The notes beneath the pieces are model-generated. The model did no database searches and had not been told where the DNA came from. It saw only the letters and a program-made list of their open reading frames with translations. Positions 2,982 through 21,891 of a DNA stretch of 64,000 nt are shown here, piece by piece; the first letter of the stretch is position 1; the number at the start of each line of letters is the position of its first letter. Both the position numbers and the translations under genes were made by a program. The stretch lies in the sequence record MT612988.1; one strand, 5' to 3'.

Positions 2982-3011
2982 TATTATACGTCTGCCAAGG
3001 TGGTTATTAAA
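2982..3011 (-). promoter_or_regulatory. GTTTAA-18-TATAAT promoter for the glutaredoxin-gp24-gp55 unit
   Basis: Minus strand reads gtttaa taaccaccttggcagacg tataat, then GAGGTGAG SD and ATG 2964. Confidence 0.6.
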
Positions 3012-3020
3012 CAAATCTTA

Positions 3021-3081
3021 CTAATACTTCTAATATTACTAAAAGCACTAATACTACTAAGATGAGACGGAATTTTTCCGC
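3021..3081. repeat. 61-bp dispersed element, copy 1: five 9-bp CTAA-iterons plus CGGAA-ttt-TTCCG hairpin
   Basis: 60/61 identical to the reverse complement of 45710-45770. Units: ctaatactt, ctaatatta, ctaaaagca, ctaatacta, ctaagatga. Confidence 0.95.
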
Positions 3082-3088
3082 TCAAACC

Positions 3089-3110
3089 AAAAAAAGCCCC
3101 TTTCGGGGCT
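3089..3110 (-). terminator. Rho-independent terminator
   Basis: agcccc-gaaa-ggggct followed by a T-run, after the SprT-like gene. Confidence 0.85.
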
Positions 3111-3128
3111 ATAAAGAGAACAACAATG

Positions 3129-3956
3129 TTATAAACCGTGAGATTTTTTGAAAGTGTCTAGACGCTTTTCGATTGTGTGAGCTTCTAGTTCAATAATGAT
3201 GTACCAATCTTTGTATTTACCACGCTGTTCAAATGACACTGACTTACAACCTTTGTGAGTAGTATTCATTACGATTTCTGCGATTGCGTCACGAGCAGCT
3301 TGACCACGTGCGTTTACTTTCTTAGCAGGCTTAGGCGCTTCAGCTTTCTTTTCAGCTTTCGGTGCAGGTGCTGCTACAGGTTCAACTGCTTTAGTATTTT
3401 CAGCTTTCTTAGCTTCGTGATCTGCTTTGATAGCGTTGAATGTTGATGTTGCAACGCAACGAAGTTGACCTTCAGTTTCAGCTTTACGACCTTTCAAGTA
3501 TAGAGCCTTGATGTGTACTGGTTGAAAACGCTTAGTCAAACGATCCATTTTCTGAACTACTTCAAGTTCACCTTGAGCGTTTTCGAAGAAAACAACGTAC
3601 TTGCTATCTACAGCATCAGGGTTAGATACAGTTGAGCAACGCTTTGCATCGCCACCTAGTTGACGGTGTACACGCTTCCAGATAGCACCGTGACCACGTT
3701 CGTTGTAATCAGTGTAAGCAATCGCATGAGCCATTTCGTGAGTGATTGTGTTGATTTGCTCTTCTTTAGTACGAGCGTTCAAGAATTCTTCAGAAATACG
3801 TAGCGTTTTAGTACGGTAGTTACAATCACCTAGTGCAGCTTTACGTTTTGAAAATTCAAATGACCAACCTTCTGCAATCAGATCGCGCTTCATCAAGTTG
3901 TTACCAGACATAAGGTCGATTGCGATAGCTTTCATTTCTGCTTTAGTGATTGTCAT
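3129..3956 (-). CDS. SprT-like zinc metalloprotease
   Basis: TITHEMAHAI (HExxH), HGAIWKRV and LGDCNY SprT-like motifs; A/P/K-rich linker. Confidence 0.85.
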   Translation of the reverse strand: MTITKAEMKAIAIDLMSGNNLMKRDLIAEGWSFEFSKRKAALGDCNYRTKTLRISEEFLNARTKEEQINTITHEMAHAIAYTDYNERGHGAIWKRVHRQLGGDAKRCSTVSNPDAVDSKYVVFFENAQGELEVVQKMDRLTKRFQPVHIKALYLKGRKAETEGQLRCVATSTFNAIKADHEAKKAENTKAVEPVAAPAPKAEKKAEAPKPAKKVNARGQAARDAIAEIVMNTTHKGCKSVSFEQRGKYKDWYIIIELEAHTIEKRLDTFKKSHGL

Positions 3957-4000
3957 AATGTTCTCTCTTTAAGTAGTTCGTATCTCGTCTTGATGTGTTT

Positions 4001-4029
4001 ATTATCGGGGATTGACGTGTTATTGTCAA
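4001..4029 (-). promoter_or_regulatory. Early sigma70-like promoter TTGACA-17-GATAAT
   Basis: -35 at 4024-4029 and -10 at 4001-4006, overlapped by a 9-bp inverted repeat at 4008-4033. Confidence 0.75.
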
Positions 4030-4064
4030 TCCCTAAAACTACTTTTTTCGTGAATTATTTCAAA

Positions 4065-4568
4065 TTATTCACTAATTGACTTCACTTTTTCGATAATTTC
4101 AACGATTTCTTTCGCTGAACGATTCGAAAATATGATTGTCGATTTTTTGCGTCGCTGTACTTCTTTATGCTTTGCTGGGTTTAGATGTCCAAGTTCGCGA
4201 TCAAGTTCCTTATTTGATAATACACTAGAACGAATCATTACGCGATGACTATCAGGCAGTCCAGTAGTCACGTATACATTTAGACCGTGCTCTTCAGAGT
4301 CCATACCAGGCTGAGATTCTCGAATCTCCCAAAAATCTGAAGACTCGCTTTGTAGTTCTGCAAGTAGTTCTTCAGCAGTTGCTTTAGGCTGTGCTTCAGC
4401 GCGTACTTTACGTGCTTTCTTCGTCTTAGCAGATTTCATTGCTTTCTGACGAAGGTCTGTTAAATAATGACGACGACCTTTCTCATCAACAACTTGAAAA
4501 CCGTTTGAGTCTACTGTCATGTTGAAGTAAGCAGCAAGTTGTTCGTTAGTCAGTGATTGTACATTCAT
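4065..4568 (-). CDS. Hypothetical early protein, 167 aa
   Basis: ORF with GAGAGA RBS and an early promoter. Confidence 0.75.
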   Translation of the reverse strand: MNVQSLTNEQLAAYFNMTVDSNGFQVVDEKGRRHYLTDLRQKAMKSAKTKKARKVRAEAQPKATAEELLAELQSESSDFWEIRESQPGMDSEEHGLNVYVTTGLPDSHRVMIRSSVLSNKELDRELGHLNPAKHKEVQRRKKSTIIFSNRSAKEIVEIIEKVKSISE

Positions 4569-6387: not shown

Positions 6388-7269
6388 TTATCGAATATCT
6401 TCTAGTTCATAACCCCAGATATTACTAAAATCTTCTTCTGATTCGACGTAATACAATGTATCTTGCTCACATAAAATCATATCACCTGCATCAAGCGCCG
6501 CACCTTTTTCACTAATATCAAATGTACGACCTGTTTTAGTGCGAACTGTAATATCACCTAGCATTGACAGCCAAATGTCAGCCGAATCTAAGTTATTGAA
6601 CTTACCACGCGGAGTTGTTGCTTCAATGTGAATAACATCACTCGATTTTCGCTCTATGTAAACTCGACCGTGTGGCAATCCAAATCGAATGAAATCTCCG
6701 TCGTTGTCTAACCAGAATAACTTAGCCCAAGTGAATGCGTTAGTATTTGGGAAAATAACGTACGTTAGTTCTTCTTCTTTGTGAATCCCGTCGTTATGCA
6801 GTCTGCGAACTTTCGGTGGGTTATTGTTCTTCAATGTGAAGCTATTTCCCATGACGTGAACCGTATAGTCCATCTTGTTCGCGTATCGCTCAGCCATACG
6901 TTTGTACAGTCGGAAACGTTTGTCTGCATCATTGCGATCTTCATCTGAGTACGCACTAAACGCAATCTCATCAGGGTTAATCTCAGACGCTTTTTCAAAC
7001 GTAGCAGCTAGAATCGTACTTAATACTGTCATGGCATCTTTAGGCGATCCTTTTGCAAGCGTGTGCGTCCAATTGCCTGTTTCACGATCTTTTCGTTGGA
7101 AAGCTACATATATGCTTACACCGCGTGGCGTTTCGCGATCTTGAATCGTTGCTAGGTATTGGGTCCCGCCTACTGTGAAACTAGCTTCATTGTGCATAGC
7201 ATCCCATCTATATGGCACTGGTCGGTCGAACGCTTCAATTAACGTTTCTCCATGTTCAAAAATGATCAT
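6388..7269 (-). CDS. Hypothetical late protein; N-terminal AFDRP domain shared with 51609-52529
   Basis: MIIFEHGETLIE|AFDRP; TATAAATA at 7294-7301. Confidence 0.8.
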   Translation of the reverse strand: MIIFEHGETLIEAFDRPVPYRWDAMHNEASFTVGGTQYLATIQDRETPRGVSIYVAFQRKDRETGNWTHTLAKGSPKDAMTVLSTILAATFEKASEINPDEIAFSAYSDEDRNDADKRFRLYKRMAERYANKMDYTVHVMGNSFTLKNNNPPKVRRLHNDGIHKEEELTYVIFPNTNAFTWAKLFWLDNDGDFIRFGLPHGRVYIERKSSDVIHIEATTPRGKFNNLDSADIWLSMLGDITVRTKTGRTFDISEKGAALDAGDMILCEQDTLYYVESEEDFSNIWGYELEDIR

Positions 7270-7293
7270 TTTCGTTATCTCTCTAAATGAAAG

Positions 7294-7301
7294 TATTTAT
7301 A
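7294..7301 (-). promoter_or_regulatory. Late promoter TATAAATA
   Basis: Exact consensus between the ligase terminator and ATG 7269. Confidence 0.8.
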
Positions 7302-7304
7302 CGC

Positions 7305-7327
7305 AAAAAGGGGCATAAGCCCCCTTT
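7305..7327 (-). terminator. Terminator after DNA ligase
   Basis: ggggc-ttat-gcccc followed by a T-run. Confidence 0.8.
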
Positions 7328-7328
7328 A

Positions 7329-8666
7329 TTAACCTTTGAACCCGCTCATTTCTTCAAGCGCATTCGCAACATCTTTGTCATCACGGAATTGCACGAAAAT
7401 AGGCAAGAAACAAGACCATGTTTCTTTATTGCGTGCGCGTGTGATTGCGTTGTAGTTGATTTCAACAATCATACCGATTACTTCATCACGACGTTCCCAA
7501 ATTTCAGCACGCTGTTTATCACTGAAGCCACTACCGACTTTAGTAATCAACATACCGCAAGCTGAACGAAGAAGAAGAGCACCCATTTTGCCTTTGTTCT
7601 TCTTGTCACCTTCGATTACTTCAATGATCTCTAAATCACCATCGTGAACTTCTTTGTATTTCACAAGTGATTTGCTTCGCTTGTTTTCCCAGAGTGCATC
7701 TGGGTCTTTCAAGATGATACCTTCTAGACCTTGAGCAACGTACTGATTGTAGATTTCAGATGCTTGTTCTTTTGTAGAAACAGTCTGCCACGGAATCGGT
7801 TCGATGATACCACGTGCTTTAATAGCAACATCTGCAAGAATCTGTTTACGTTTACTGTACGGCATGTTCAATTCATTCGACTTACCGAAATAAACGTCTT
7901 CAGGGATGATATCCCACACTTGAAATACAATGTCAGCCTGTTCTTTCGGTGTGATTGTACCTTTGCTTGCTTTGTTGACAATGCCATTACCAGTCGAACG
8001 GTCTTCAACCTCATGTAAACCGTTTGGCGCGTACACAAGCTCACCGTCGATAACAAAGCCGTTTACACCCATTTCAGTCAAACCTTTCTCAACTTTGACT
8101 AGACCTTGATAGCGTTTACCGTTACGCGATGTAAGAGTAATGTTACCATCTAAGTCAACATGAGCGAAACAACGAGCACCATCAGCTTTCAATTCAGCGT
8201 ATGCGATTTTAGTTAGAATCGCGTCGATTAGTTTGTCGTTCTTCGGGCTTGCAAGCATTTGAGGTTGTTCTGGAATCAGTTTCTTCCAAACTTTGTTTGC
8301 AGTACCACCCGTACAACCAGTTCGAAGGTCTTTCAATATAACACGACGAATCACTTCCGCGTCGTCTTCAGAAACTGAAGCGAGTATACGAGCAACAAAA
8401 TCTTGTGCAGAATGACCGCGCACTTGATTCACAACCAACGCACTAAACACTTGCTCTAGTGCATCTTCTAGTTCGGTATATTCATGCACATATGCTTCAC
8501 CTGCATTCACTTCAGGCAGTTTCTTCATATTAAACTGATACGTAGGTGTGTATGCAAGCTCAAATACACGCTTTAGCAATTCATTGTCTTTTTCAGACTT
8601 CAGGATTGCTTCTTTTTCAGTGCGTTTAGTCGTTGCTGCTAGTTTATTCAGGATTGGTAGAATCAT
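7329..8666 (-). CDS. 30: ATP-dependent DNA ligase gp30
   Basis: ELKADGAR (KxDG), IDGEL, EGIILK, WENKRS and VGSGF motifs. Confidence 0.97.
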   Translation of the reverse strand: MILPILNKLAATTKRTEKEAILKSEKDNELLKRVFELAYTPTYQFNMKKLPEVNAGEAYVHEYTELEDALEQVFSALVVNQVRGHSAQDFVARILASVSEDDAEVIRRVILKDLRTGCTGGTANKVWKKLIPEQPQMLASPKNDKLIDAILTKIAYAELKADGARCFAHVDLDGNITLTSRNGKRYQGLVKVEKGLTEMGVNGFVIDGELVYAPNGLHEVEDRSTGNGIVNKASKGTITPKEQADIVFQVWDIIPEDVYFGKSNELNMPYSKRKQILADVAIKARGIIEPIPWQTVSTKEQASEIYNQYVAQGLEGIILKDPDALWENKRSKSLVKYKEVHDGDLEIIEVIEGDKKNKGKMGALLLRSACGMLITKVGSGFSDKQRAEIWERRDEVIGMIVEINYNAITRARNKETWSCFLPIFVQFRDDKDVANALEEMSGFKG

Positions 8667-19390: not shown

Positions 19391-19677
19391 AGAGTATTCA
19401 ACACATCAACAATTTGAATTTTTTCAACAGTGTGAAATCCGTATTCACAGTAAGGCATTTGTTCAGAAATGAACTGAATATCATCTTCACTGAACTCAGG
19501 GTATACTTCTGAGTTCGGACGCTCTTGACATTCGCCTTCTGTCCAACTCGCCAGAGAATCACCAGAAAGATGTACGAGCGTTTCAAATCGCTCAACTTCT
19601 TCACTCGATGCCGGTTTCAAATCGCCAACGTAATCACCATCATTGGTGTCAACTTCTACGTAAATATGTAACGCCAT
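19387..19677 (-). CDS. Hypothetical protein (start ATG 19677, MALHIY...)
   Basis: GAGG SD; overlaps the stop of the upstream gene. Confidence 0.65.
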   Translation of the reverse strand: MALHIYVEVDTNDGDYVGDLKPASSEEVERFETLVHLSGDSLASWTEGECQERPNSEVYPEFSEDDIQFISEQMPYCEYGFHTVEKIQIVDVLNTL

Positions 19678-19907
19678 TACAAATTCCTCATTATTGTGCC
19701 TATTAAAGCGAAAACAATCGCCGAGATGAACAATACAACCCACCCAGCGACTGTATGACCCGAAATGATGAGCCATGCACCGAAGATAAGCCCGCCAACT
19801 GACAATCCGAGAATAACCAACATTGCGACGATACCGAACGCAATCAATGTCAACAACCCCGTTACGAACTCACCTAAGTTCATGTTACTCACCAATTTCA
19901 AAGTCAA
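19677..19907 (-). CDS. Membrane protein
   Basis: Two to three hydrophobic segments. Confidence 0.7.
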   Translation of the reverse strand: MTLKLVSNMNLGEFVTGLLTLIAFGIVAMLVILGLSVGGLIFGAWLIISGHTVAGWVVLFISAIVFALIGTIMRNL

Positions 19908-20079
19908 AAAGATAGTGAATCTTGCCGTCAGTTAGCGAATCGCCGATGAGCGGGTCGTTAGCTGCAACAACTTTGCTGTACGGAAGTTTGATAAGCTCAC
20001 CGTCGATTGTGTCAATTCGCTCAATTACAATGATCGGCGTACCTGTTTTCAGTTCAAAATAATCTGTTTTACTAATCAC
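19885..20079 (-). CDS. Hypothetical protein
   Basis: ATGA-coupled to td. Confidence 0.6.
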   Translation of the reverse strand: MISKTDYFELKTGTPIIVIERIDTIDGELIKLPYSKVVAANDPLIGDSLTDGKIHYLFDFEIGE

Positions 20080-20978
20080 GACATTTTACCTTTTAGGGTT
20101 GGGTATGGGTCATAGTCATATACGCGAAAATCACTTGCGCGTTTAGTTAACAACTGTGACAACGTTTCAAATTCAGGAAGTTCAATCTGAGGTAGCGCAC
20201 GCGGCGTACGTCTCATTTGCTTCATTACTTGTATTAGATGATCTTCATAAATGTGAACATCACCACCAGAGAAAATCAATTCACCGACACCTAAGCCAGT
20301 CAATTTAGCTAGTATATGCACTAGCAAAGCATACGATGCGATATTGAACGGTAGACCTAAGAATGTGTCAACTGAACGCTGATTCCATTTCAAGCTGATC
20401 TTACCATTACGCACGAACACTTGAAAGCCGTAATGACATGGCGGTAGAGCTACGTCAACTGAGTTACTTTCAGTATGGAAGTACGGGTCCCATGCTTCAA
20501 CAAGCATACGACGTTGCGCACTTTGCGTCGGGTCTTCATTAACCGCTGCAATATCGCACAGCAATTGATGAATCTGGTCAAACTCAACAATTTCTCGCTC
20601 TGCATTTACAGATAGACGTTTACGCCACACTTTGCCATAGACATAACCAAGGTCGTCTTCATTGCGAACAATACCTGCTTCTTTCGCACGCTCGTTCAGC
20701 TCGTCGAGATTTTGTTGCCAGATACAGAAATCTTCGTCTGATAATTCAGTGTATTTTCTCAGTTCAGAAATCGAACCTGAACCGCTCAAGAACCATAGCA
20801 ACTCACCGAAAATAGCTCTTGTCGCCATTTTCTTAGTCGTTAGCAACGGGAAACCTTTTTCTAAGTCCCATCGAAGCTCACGCGAAACAACACTAACAGT
20901 ATTCGTGCCTGTTCTATTCTCAAGAAAATCACCATTTTCTAGAATATCTTTACAAAGTTCCAAGTAGTTTTTCATCAA
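20076..20978 (-). CDS. td: Thymidylate synthase (uninterrupted)
   Basis: FPLLTTKK, ELLWFLSG, LPPCH, QRSVD, LGLPFNIASY, HIY. Confidence 0.97.
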   Translation of the reverse strand: MMKNYLELCKDILENGDFLENRTGTNTVSVVSRELRWDLEKGFPLLTTKKMATRAIFGELLWFLSGSGSISELRKYTELSDEDFCIWQQNLDELNERAKEAGIVRNEDDLGYVYGKVWRKRLSVNAEREIVEFDQIHQLLCDIAAVNEDPTQSAQRRMLVEAWDPYFHTESNSVDVALPPCHYGFQVFVRNGKISLKWNQRSVDTFLGLPFNIASYALLVHILAKLTGLGVGELIFSGGDVHIYEDHLIQVMKQMRRTPRALPQIELPEFETLSQLLTKRASDFRVYDYDPYPTLKGKMS

Positions 20979-20984
20979 TTACCT

Positions 20985-21188
20985 TTAAAAATCATCGTCC
21001 CATACTGCTTGCACGGGAGTACATTGCATCAACTGACCGTCAATTTCATAAGTCTCTGATTGCGGTTGAGTACTGTAAGATGTAGGTTGTTCAGCCCCAA
21101 ACAACGTACCAGCAGCTACCGACGCTAGAATCCCTAGAATCGCAATCAAAACAATCAATTCGATCAGAGTAAAACCTTTAGATTTCAT
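20985..21188 (-). CDS. Mini type IV prepilin-like protein, 67 aa
   Basis: MKSKG|FTLIELIVLIAILGILASVA: basic leader, G|F cleavage site, E at +5, hydrophobic helix. Confidence 0.85.
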   Translation of the reverse strand: MKSKGFTLIELIVLIAILGILASVAAGTLFGAEQPTSYSTQPQSETYEIDGQLMQCTPVQAVWDDDF

Positions 21189-21224
21189 AATATTACACTC
21201 ACAAAGTTAGTTAATAAACAGTTT

Positions 21225-21455
21225 TTACGGCAGTTTGCTCGTTTTGCGTGCTTGCTTTGCCGTTTCAGGTAGTTTCACTTCAAAGTGCTCTGCTTGTGAA
21301 ACGTACAATACGCGCTCTGCAAGTAATTCACCGTTCTCGTAAACAGTCGTAATGAATTCAGGACCAGAAGAGCTATTTTTAACATCAACACCTGGTTTTG
21401 TCATTAGCTCTTCAAAGCGAGTCGCAGTAGTCAATTTAAGATTTAAGTTATCCAT
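21225..21455 (-). CDS. Hypothetical protein
   Basis: 76-aa ORF. Confidence 0.65.
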   Translation of the reverse strand: MDNLNLKLTTATRFEELMTKPGVDVKNSSSGPEFITTVYENGELLAERVLYVSQAEHFEVKLPETAKQARKTSKLP

Positions 21456-21891
21456 GATGAGAATGAAACCCCTCTAAGTATTTTGCAAGTTCATATGTTC
21501 GACCGTATTTGTAGAACATATCTGAATCAAAGTCGCGACGCTTTAGACCTTCGCCGATCTTACGCAGTTCACGCCATTCTTTCATTTCGGCTTGAACTTG
21601 CATTAGCGTGTCGTCGCCAATGAATGCTACACCTGTTAGTGAGTGATGTAAACCTTCTTCTTGAAAAAATGTAATGTCTTCAACAACACCCATTTCACGA
21701 ATTGTCTCTTCGATTTCTTCAAGATGGTCATGACTAGCCGCTGACAGAACACAAATCGTCTCGTGATCATTCAGCCACTTATTGAAAACTGGGTTATCTG
21801 CTTTACGCGCAAGACGTAGAAGCGCATGTGCACCTTGAATACCAGCTTGAATACCTTTACAATAGCGATTTACAAATACGTAACCTTTCAA
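21448..21891 (-). CDS. PTH2 (peptidyl-tRNA hydrolase 2)-like protein
   Basis: YVFVN...GIQGAHA...W...HETICVL...FQE...LTGVAF follows the PTH2 pattern (AQxAHA, W, KIVL, T); GTG start. Confidence 0.5.
   Translation of the reverse strand: MKGYVFVNRYCKGIQAGIQGAHALLRLARKADNPVFNKWLNDHETICVLSAASHDHLEEIEETIREMGVVEDITFFQEEGLHHSLTGVAFIGDDTLMQVQAEMKEWRELRKIGEGLKRRDFDSDMFYKYGRTYELAKYLEGFHSHHG

Follow-up and report, generated by a model that had tools for sequence, protein, structure and literature searches.

Pilin-class proteins encoded by phages have been described in Pseudomonas phages by Sztanko et al. (Cell Rep 2026; PMC12952977), who found truncated PilA-like proteins of ~60 residues (truncated P-PilA) in six virulent phages and hypothesised that these either enter the pilus, where they offer no binding site to phages, or inhibit its assembly. 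In the same study, the prophage-encoded P-FimU, a full-length minor pilin, enters the pilus, keeps it functional and blocks the phages that bind to its tip (PMC12952977). For the Aeromonas phages 44RR2.8t and Aeh1, matches to Pfam N_methyl were reported in 2006 (PMC1524935). The protein studied here is encoded in the window, by which we mean the whole stretch of 64,000 nucleotides of record MT612988.1 that was analysed, and its likeness to pilins was also on record: the entry of its orthologue KVP40.0030 carries the note "match to PF00114", the UniRef name of KVP40.0030 is prepilin-type cleavage/methylation protein, the orthologues of QD01 and 6E35.1a are annotated as "PilE", most records have "hypothetical protein", and the paper on ValKK3 mentions a weak PilE match (PMC13142089). 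Neither the motif nor the idea is thus new, and the initial annotation implied more novelty than there is: the likeness had been annotated, and Sztanko et al. had put the same speculation into print. What this analysis adds is the conserved tail, the evidence of selection, the extent of the family and the enrichment in viruses.

By comparison with truncated P-PilA, the window protein also belongs to a virulent phage and has also kept only the N-terminal pilin helix, with 67 aa, a pilin N-terminus and a T4-like genome around it. The two are different past the shared motif, where tblastn detected no homology and where the Vibrio family has a tail block of its own with a lone Cys, so that the window protein is a member of the same kind and not of the same sequence family. 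P-FimU of the F10-like Pseudomonas phages would be comparable as a phage-encoded pilin-class protein which uses the assembly machinery of the host and alters the pilus towards other phages. However, P-FimU is full-length, has a head with extra loops and is expressed from a prophage, whereas the window protein is headless, comes from a virulent T4-like phage and showed neither a FimU-like fold nor a prophage context.

Geopilin, a structural subunit of cellular origin, functions together with a head-like partner whose gene is separate. Geopilin domain 1, or PilA-N, of Geobacter (PDB 7tgg, 9egp, 2m7g and 6vk9) has ~60 mature residues and is essentially a helix only; its alignment to the window protein covers only residues 2-42 and is driven by residues 2-30, with no likeness past alpha1-N. 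The ORF of 76 aa that lies upstream of the mini-pilin gene and always adjoins it in the clade (21225-21455, minus strand; PHROG 14360) was considered as a PilA-C-like head partner and rejected, because it has neither a signal nor a membrane segment; without a hydrophobic segment it is not a secreted partner of the mini-pilin. Imm, Sp and RI of phage T4 are small early envelope proteins which act in superinfection exclusion or lysis inhibition and protect the infected cell. Their likeness to the window protein is one of role, by analogy only, given that they carry no prepilin signal and that no similarity of the window protein to these families was found in Pfam, NCBIfam or PHROGs.

Gene and genomic setting

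The mini-pilin is encoded on the minus strand at 20985-21188, with an ATG start and 67 codons plus the stop, and both the ORF and the N-terminus quoted in the initial annotation were exact. It is the orthologue of KVP40.0030, with 76% identity, it matches PHROG 13280 over residues 1-67 (E-value 2.1e-46), and it is 100% identical to vBValMR10Z_144 of Vibrio phage vB_ValM_R10Z. A GAGTG element, read as a putative Shine-Dalgarno sequence, is located 7 nt 5′ of the ATG (21196-21200, minus strand) within the 36-nt spacer that separates the upstream ORF from the start codon. The thymidylate synthase gene td (20076-20978, minus strand; PF00303, E-value 3.4e-79) begins 6-9 nt past the stop of the mini-pilin on the same strand, and the two genes are probably co-transcribed. 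In the 4 kb compared, the window showed 100% identity to vB_ValM_R10Z, 99.8-100% to VH7D, phi-ST2 and others, and 87.5% to KVP40. These relatives are T4-like, virulent phages of the genus Schizotequatrovirus (the KVP40 group) in the Straboviridae.

The gene is one in a long row on the same strand, made up of genes for replication and nucleotide metabolism, with td, a PTH2-like hydrolase, dexA, dut and primase as its neighbours. No pilus assembly genes (ATPase, platform, peptidase or secretin) were found near the mini-pilin of the window, so that the proximity to assembly genes expected of a canonical pilin is missing. Considering its neighbours, an early or middle expression would be expected. 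No T4-type late promoter (TATAAATA) was present on the minus strand between window positions 7301 and 37268, and a scan for sigma-70 promoters and terminators between 18000 and 26000 returned 17 promoter-like sites for 16.5 expected, which is the level of chance and therefore gives no evidence of timing. The literature search found no transcriptome or proteome of a KVP40-type infection. The mini-pilin and its two upstream neighbours had no match in PADLOC, and the whole window (1-64000) contained zero tRNA genes and zero Rfam families at the gathering threshold.

Other features of the surroundings were observed in their own right. The PTH2-like gene, an ORF of 147 aa at 21448-21891 (minus strand) with a PTH2 (peptidyl-tRNA hydrolase) match of 26.1 bits for a cut-off of 23, keeps its place two genes 5′ of the mini-pilin in the whole clade and shares 8 nt with the 76-aa ORF. 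About 1.1 kb downstream of the mini-pilin there is another ORF of 76 aa (19677-19907, minus strand), nearly all hydrophobic and with no Pfam match, which probably forms 2-3 membrane helices. A terminator-like hairpin with a T-run covers the last codons of the mini-pilin just 5′ of td (20998-21018, minus strand); its pairing is kept in Schizotequatrovirus, with changes from G-C to G-U, and is not kept in 6E35.1a or in the short metagenomic contig L013. This hairpin could modulate the read-through into td or the translation of td, or it could be there by chance. In a metagenomic relative of KVP40 (contig L015, 6222-8099), the td gene beside the mini-pilin is in 2 pieces with an ORF for a GIY-YIG/I-TevI-like endonuclease between them, an arrangement that, from its sequence, resembles an intron or homing element. 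In ValKK3, an annotated homing endonuclease is found inside the 4-kb region compared, which matched in 2 pieces and is ~700 bp longer than in the window.

Prepilin signal, conservation and tail

Every element of the class III signal listed in the initial annotation was present. The leader peptide (residues 1-5; 21174-21188, minus strand) has a net charge of +2 and ends with Gly5 at position -1, followed by Phe6 at +1 and Glu10 at +5. Residues 6-32 (21093-21173, minus strand), with a mean Kyte-Doolittle hydropathy of 2.27, are predicted to form a hydrophobic helix similar to alpha1-N, in agreement with the AlphaFold2 model and the sequence matches in the PDB. The match to Pfam PF07963 N_methyl (E-value 2.7e-7) scored 30.3 bits for a gathering cut-off of 21.2, and that to NCBIfam TIGR02532 IV_pilin_GFxxxE scored 26.6 bits for a cut-off of 16.3; since both are above curated cut-offs, the signal is more than chance. 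A six-frame scan of the 64-kb window for G-[FMLIVY]-[TS]-[LM]-[ILV]-E gave 2 matches, among which only the mini-pilin combined an N-terminal position of the motif in its ORF with a hydrophobic stretch behind it; the second match (51004, plus strand) had no hydrophobic stretch after the motif.

Substrates of the T4a/T2SS subclass have a leader of fewer than 10 residues and Phe at +1, while those of T4b have a long leader and Met, Leu or Val at +1, and those of Tad have the Flp motif. In all 14 members of the family the leader had 5-9 residues and the residue at +1 was always Phe. Judged from its sequence, the protein lacks none of the features that define PilD substrates of the T4a/T2SS class, and the cleavage by prepilin peptidase would take place after Gly5. 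The N-terminal similarity does not tell which host system is concerned, since the NCBIfam and PDB matches are non-discriminating and the models of GspG, GspH, PilA, MshA and ComG reach similar scores, all from residues 1-36 alone. Among the matches listed, the best one in a Vibrio genome (L098) reached 85% identity over residues 1-26 only. It was evaluated as a pointer to the host system being mimicked and rejected, as it is an orphan pilin of 183 aa beside asd and a GGDEF/EAL gene, with no msh, pil or eps cluster. Vibrios have PilD/VcpD, MSHA, PilA-type pili and the Eps T2SS. When a Pfam-confirmed PilD of Shewanella was used as the query, no homologue of prepilin peptidase was found in any Vibrio phage record, and therefore any processing must use the PilD of the host.

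Each of the relatives examined had one intact copy in the same place. The order PTH2-like hydrolase, 76-aa ORF, mini-pilin and td is fixed in the Schizotequatrovirus isolates, in Mylasvirus nt-1 and CZ01, in VS1, QD01 and F86 and in the 6E35.1a group of Vibrio crassostreae phages, whose genomes have 253 kb, and it was also seen in two metagenomic relatives. The ORF was intact in 11/11 isolates. Together with 3 metagenomic relatives, which HMMER retrieved when 1.84 billion representative proteins were searched exhaustively, these orthologues make up the 14 members of the family; a word-indexed protein search returned 4 proteins only, and tblastn with the window protein at E≤10 returned Vibrio phages only.

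The alignment of the 11 orthologues showed two conserved blocks with a variable linker between them. In the numbering of the mature protein, where G14 corresponds to window G19 and the helix-breaker G22 to window G27, the residues K-2 and G-1 (K4 and G5 of the leader), F1, T2, L3, E5 and G14 were invariant in 14/14 members, and most of the invariant signal sites were encoded by 2-5 synonymous codons. The other positions of the helix vary among hydrophobic residues. The invariance of these determinants despite the turnover of synonymous codons speaks for their being in use. In pairs with the window gene, dN/dS was 0.16-0.27 where dS was measurable. The codon comparisons thus indicate purifying selection on the amino acids themselves, including the residues that would serve in recognition by prepilin peptidase and in pilin assembly.

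Neither Pfam nor the PDB had a match for the ~38-40 residues behind the hydrophobic helix, which confirmed the initial claim that a globular pilin head is absent. What did not stand was the notion that the tail amounts to the mere absence of a head, given that it contains a strongly conserved block, E48-P58, with a lone invariant Cys56. Residues 33-67 are 35 residues with a net charge of -7 and no basic residue. They start with a variable linker rich in Ser, Thr, Gln and Pro (residues 33-46; 21051-21092, minus strand), which had the highest dN of the 3 segments (0.32-0.73) and a low pLDDT. It is followed by the conserved block (residues 47-58; 21015-21050, minus strand), in which E48, G51, Q55, C56, T57 and P58 were invariant and I49, D50, Q52 and M54 nearly invariant in the 11 phage orthologues; G51, C56 and T57 were invariant in 14/14 members with 2-3 synonymous codons each. 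The dN of this block was ~0-0.08 within Schizotequatrovirus and Mylasvirus. The last residues, 59-67 (20988-21014, minus strand), with an acidic run and a final Phe, are present in some lineages and missing in nt-1, VS1, QD01, CZ01 and F86. The tail alone (residues 28-67) had no match in the PDB, and in Pfam only a chance match with an E-value of 0.26. With one Cys only, it has no C-terminal alpha-beta head with a disulfide-bounded D-region as in canonical pilins.

AlphaFold2 was run on a family alignment of 9 sequences. The model has a helix at residues 8-29, with a pLDDT up to 89 for the block, and a hairpin of low confidence (pLDDT ~60, pTM 0.30) with strands at 45-49 and 52-56 and a turn at D50-G51, so that the tail block is predicted as a beta-hairpin which carries the lone Cys56. 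In Foldseek the model had no match in the PDB at E≤0.001, the best E-value being 6.7, as it is too small and too uncertain. By sequence, the PDB matches were geopilin domain 1, MshA, PilA, PilE and GspG, with only the N-terminal 30-42 residues aligned, and the best were those of geopilin domain 1 (48.7 and 47.9 bits). Taking into account the conservation of the tail block and of its lone Cys56, the tail points to a specific periplasmic interaction rather than to simple headlessness. It may be speculated that a lone invariant Cys in an oxidising compartment forms an intermolecular disulfide.

Mini-pilins of other phages

Metagenomic relatives of the mini-pilin were found on L015, a contig related to KVP40 whose topoisomerase is 71.6% identical to that of the clade, and on the short contig L013. 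A third contig (L014; ENA ERZ27250139) encodes a mini-pilin of 73 aa at 3113-3334 among small ORFs, ~560 nt upstream of a gene for N4-like RNA polymerase 2, and this polymerase has 47% identity to its counterpart in an N4-like phage of Alteromonas. From its sequence the 73-aa protein is probably a member of the KVP40-type family, an assignment that is provisional because it is based on a short tail similarity. The contig suggests that the module has been transferred between T4-like and N4-like marine phages.

Other mini-pilins were found in ORF097c of 44RR2.8t (72 aa), ORF040c of Aeh1, PHROGs 10597 and 11263 and the metagenomic protein P0004, and 5 PHROGs other than 13280 matched by their N-terminus, 2 of them with profiles of 59 and 72 residues. 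Like the window protein, these mini-pilins come from short ORFs of virulent and mostly aquatic phages and have the class III signal in full. However, their tails are unrelated to the KVP40 type, and many have two Cys, which could close a disulfide loop, whereas the KVP40 type has one. A separate family of 76-82 aa with a well-conserved two-Cys tail was observed in three viral contigs of IMG/VR of 57-168 kb (L021, L030 and L031).

ORF097c of 44RR2.8t and P0004 are directly downstream of an SPFH/Band_7 gene, whereas the KVP40-type gene is not. In 44RR2.8t (L178) the mini-pilin of 72 aa is at 2998-3216 and the SPFH/Band_7 "lipoprotein" gene at 3270-4193, both on the minus strand; in contig L012 the SPFH/Band_7 gene is at 7092-7883 and a mini-pilin of 58 aa follows directly at 7969-8145. 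SPFH/Band_7 and mini-pilin may thus be a recurrent pairing across two unrelated phages. The same pairing was considered for the KVP40 group and discarded, as no Band_7 gene adjoins the pilin-like gene in the regions examined.

Among the ORFs with a pilin motif, those of ≤100 aa were 23/95 in a viral set of the best 80 IMG/VR loci and 2/99 in a cellular set of the best 80 loci of cellular genomes (Fisher p 2e-6), a viral enrichment which is indicative and not definitive, given that the scan patterns differed and that the best 80 loci were sampled. The scan of cellular genomes used only the N-terminal pattern, and a tail block in bacteria is outside its reach.

Candidate mechanism and its alternatives

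The motif was observed to be conserved and under selection, the gene order to be fixed, and the phage to lack a peptidase; the mechanism that we arranged around these observations is conjectural in its timing, topology, cleavage, docking and outcome. The reading that we prefer, tentatively and at somewhat less than an even chance, is that the phage mini-pilin depends on host PilD, engages the assembly of T4a pili or of the T2SS and presents its tail hairpin in the periplasm, with the result that filaments are blocked, capped or changed. The interpretation in the initial annotation thus has partial support: a dominant-negative function, from which it expected superinfection exclusion, a block of DNA uptake or secretion, or altered adhesion, would be plausible. 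The protein would be expressed in the early or middle phase with the surrounding nucleotide-metabolism and replication genes. The basic leader and the hydrophobic helix would place the protein in the inner membrane so that its N-terminus faces the cytoplasm and its tail the periplasm, a topology that fits the charges of +2 in the leader and -7 in the tail. Host PilD/VcpD would remove residues 1-5 and N-methylate Phe6, leaving a mature peptide of ~62 residues. E5, G14 and the breaker at 22 are the positions that would let the helix of a real pilin leave the membrane and pack in the core of the filament and, considering that they are kept, the mature peptide would most likely dock at the assembly platform, either with T4a pilins of the host, of the MSHA or the PilA type, or with its T2SS pseudopilins. 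A short acidic tail would then stand in place of the head, with the conserved one-Cys hairpin as the likely effector surface, and the pili or pseudopili of the infected cell would be blocked, capped or changed in favour of host takeover or superinfection exclusion. KVP40 adsorbs to OmpK and to no pilus (PMC13609209), so that self-exclusion through pili would have no obvious benefit. Pili are unmentioned in a phage-resistance study with phi-St2 and phi-Grn1.

It is also conceivable, though rather unlikely, that the tail is a periplasmic effector on a target other than the pilus (envelope, lysis timing or DNA entry) and that the signal is only an anchor or a means of export, in the manner of T4 Imm, Sp and RI. 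The tail block is conserved as strongly as the signal, with a dN of ~0 against KVP40, and it is without relatives in Pfam or the PDB; the receptor of KVP40 is OmpK; the gene is found among small early ORFs, including that of the small membrane protein at 19677-19907; and exclusion and lysis inhibition by small envelope proteins are well known from T4-like phages. However, a simple anchor would not need G-1, F1, E5 and G14, and their invariance under synonymous turnover, which it leaves unexplained, argues for more than a plain membrane anchor. A charged Glu so early in a membrane helix would also be costly unless it is used, and the database searches showed no similarity to the T4 proteins.

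A functional decoration or replacement similar to that of P-FimU, with incorporation at low stoichiometry in the tip or the shaft, continued assembly and an alteration of the filament surface by which other phages or ligands know it, is distinctly unlikely. It has a precedent in P-FimU, which enters the pilus and blocks tip-binding phages while the pilus keeps its function (PMC12952977), and the mini-pilin does retain E5, G14 and the breaker at 22. Against it, ~38 tail residues cannot reproduce the contacts of a minor-pilin head, and the phage is virulent and has no long-term expression from a prophage.

Even less probable is that an abundant early mini-prepilin acts as a competitive substrate or inhibitor, occupying PilD so that the host prepilins (MSHA, PilA and T2SS pseudopilins) stay unprocessed. 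The substrate motif is ideal and invariant, the pathway depends on a single peptidase and the phage has none of its own; but E5, G14 and the conserved tail would not be needed for such a role, and it is doubtful that the enzyme would stay occupied for long by a substrate that it can cleave. A host pilin gene captured and now in decay, or a functionless chance ORF, as the "hypothetical protein" of most records and the host match of 85% over residues 1-26 only (the best Vibrio genomic match among those listed) might suggest, can be set aside as very improbable and was already disfavoured, given an ORF intact in 11 isolates and 3 metagenomic relatives, a dN/dS of 0.16-0.27 with saturated dS, a conserved tail block and a synteny fixed over at least 4 lineages.

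Returning to the preferred reading, that of a mini-pilin which engages T4a pilus or T2SS assembly, a bolder form of it can be stated, to which we give only a small chance. Mini-pilins would be phage-specific, PilD-processed chain terminators; the periplasmic one-Cys hairpin of the KVP40 family would form a specific complex with a component of the host pilus or T2SS, possibly linked by a disulfide, and shut down filament dynamics within minutes of infection; and virulent marine phages as unrelated as the T4-like and the N4-like would exchange the module.

If the peptide were unprocessed or without effect on pili, its gene would be no more than another of the small early ORFs for membrane proteins that a large phage carries. 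In vibrios, adhesion, the uptake of DNA, secretion and the entry of phages are under the control of type IV pili and the T2SS. If the mini-pilin enters the pilin pathway, it would be a natural and compact probe, of 62 residues, of pilin extraction and filament assembly, and the recent finding of pilin mimics in phages, made with full-length proteins of prophages, would be widened to headless proteins and to virulent phages, with the conserved tail as a concrete interaction surface that can be tested.
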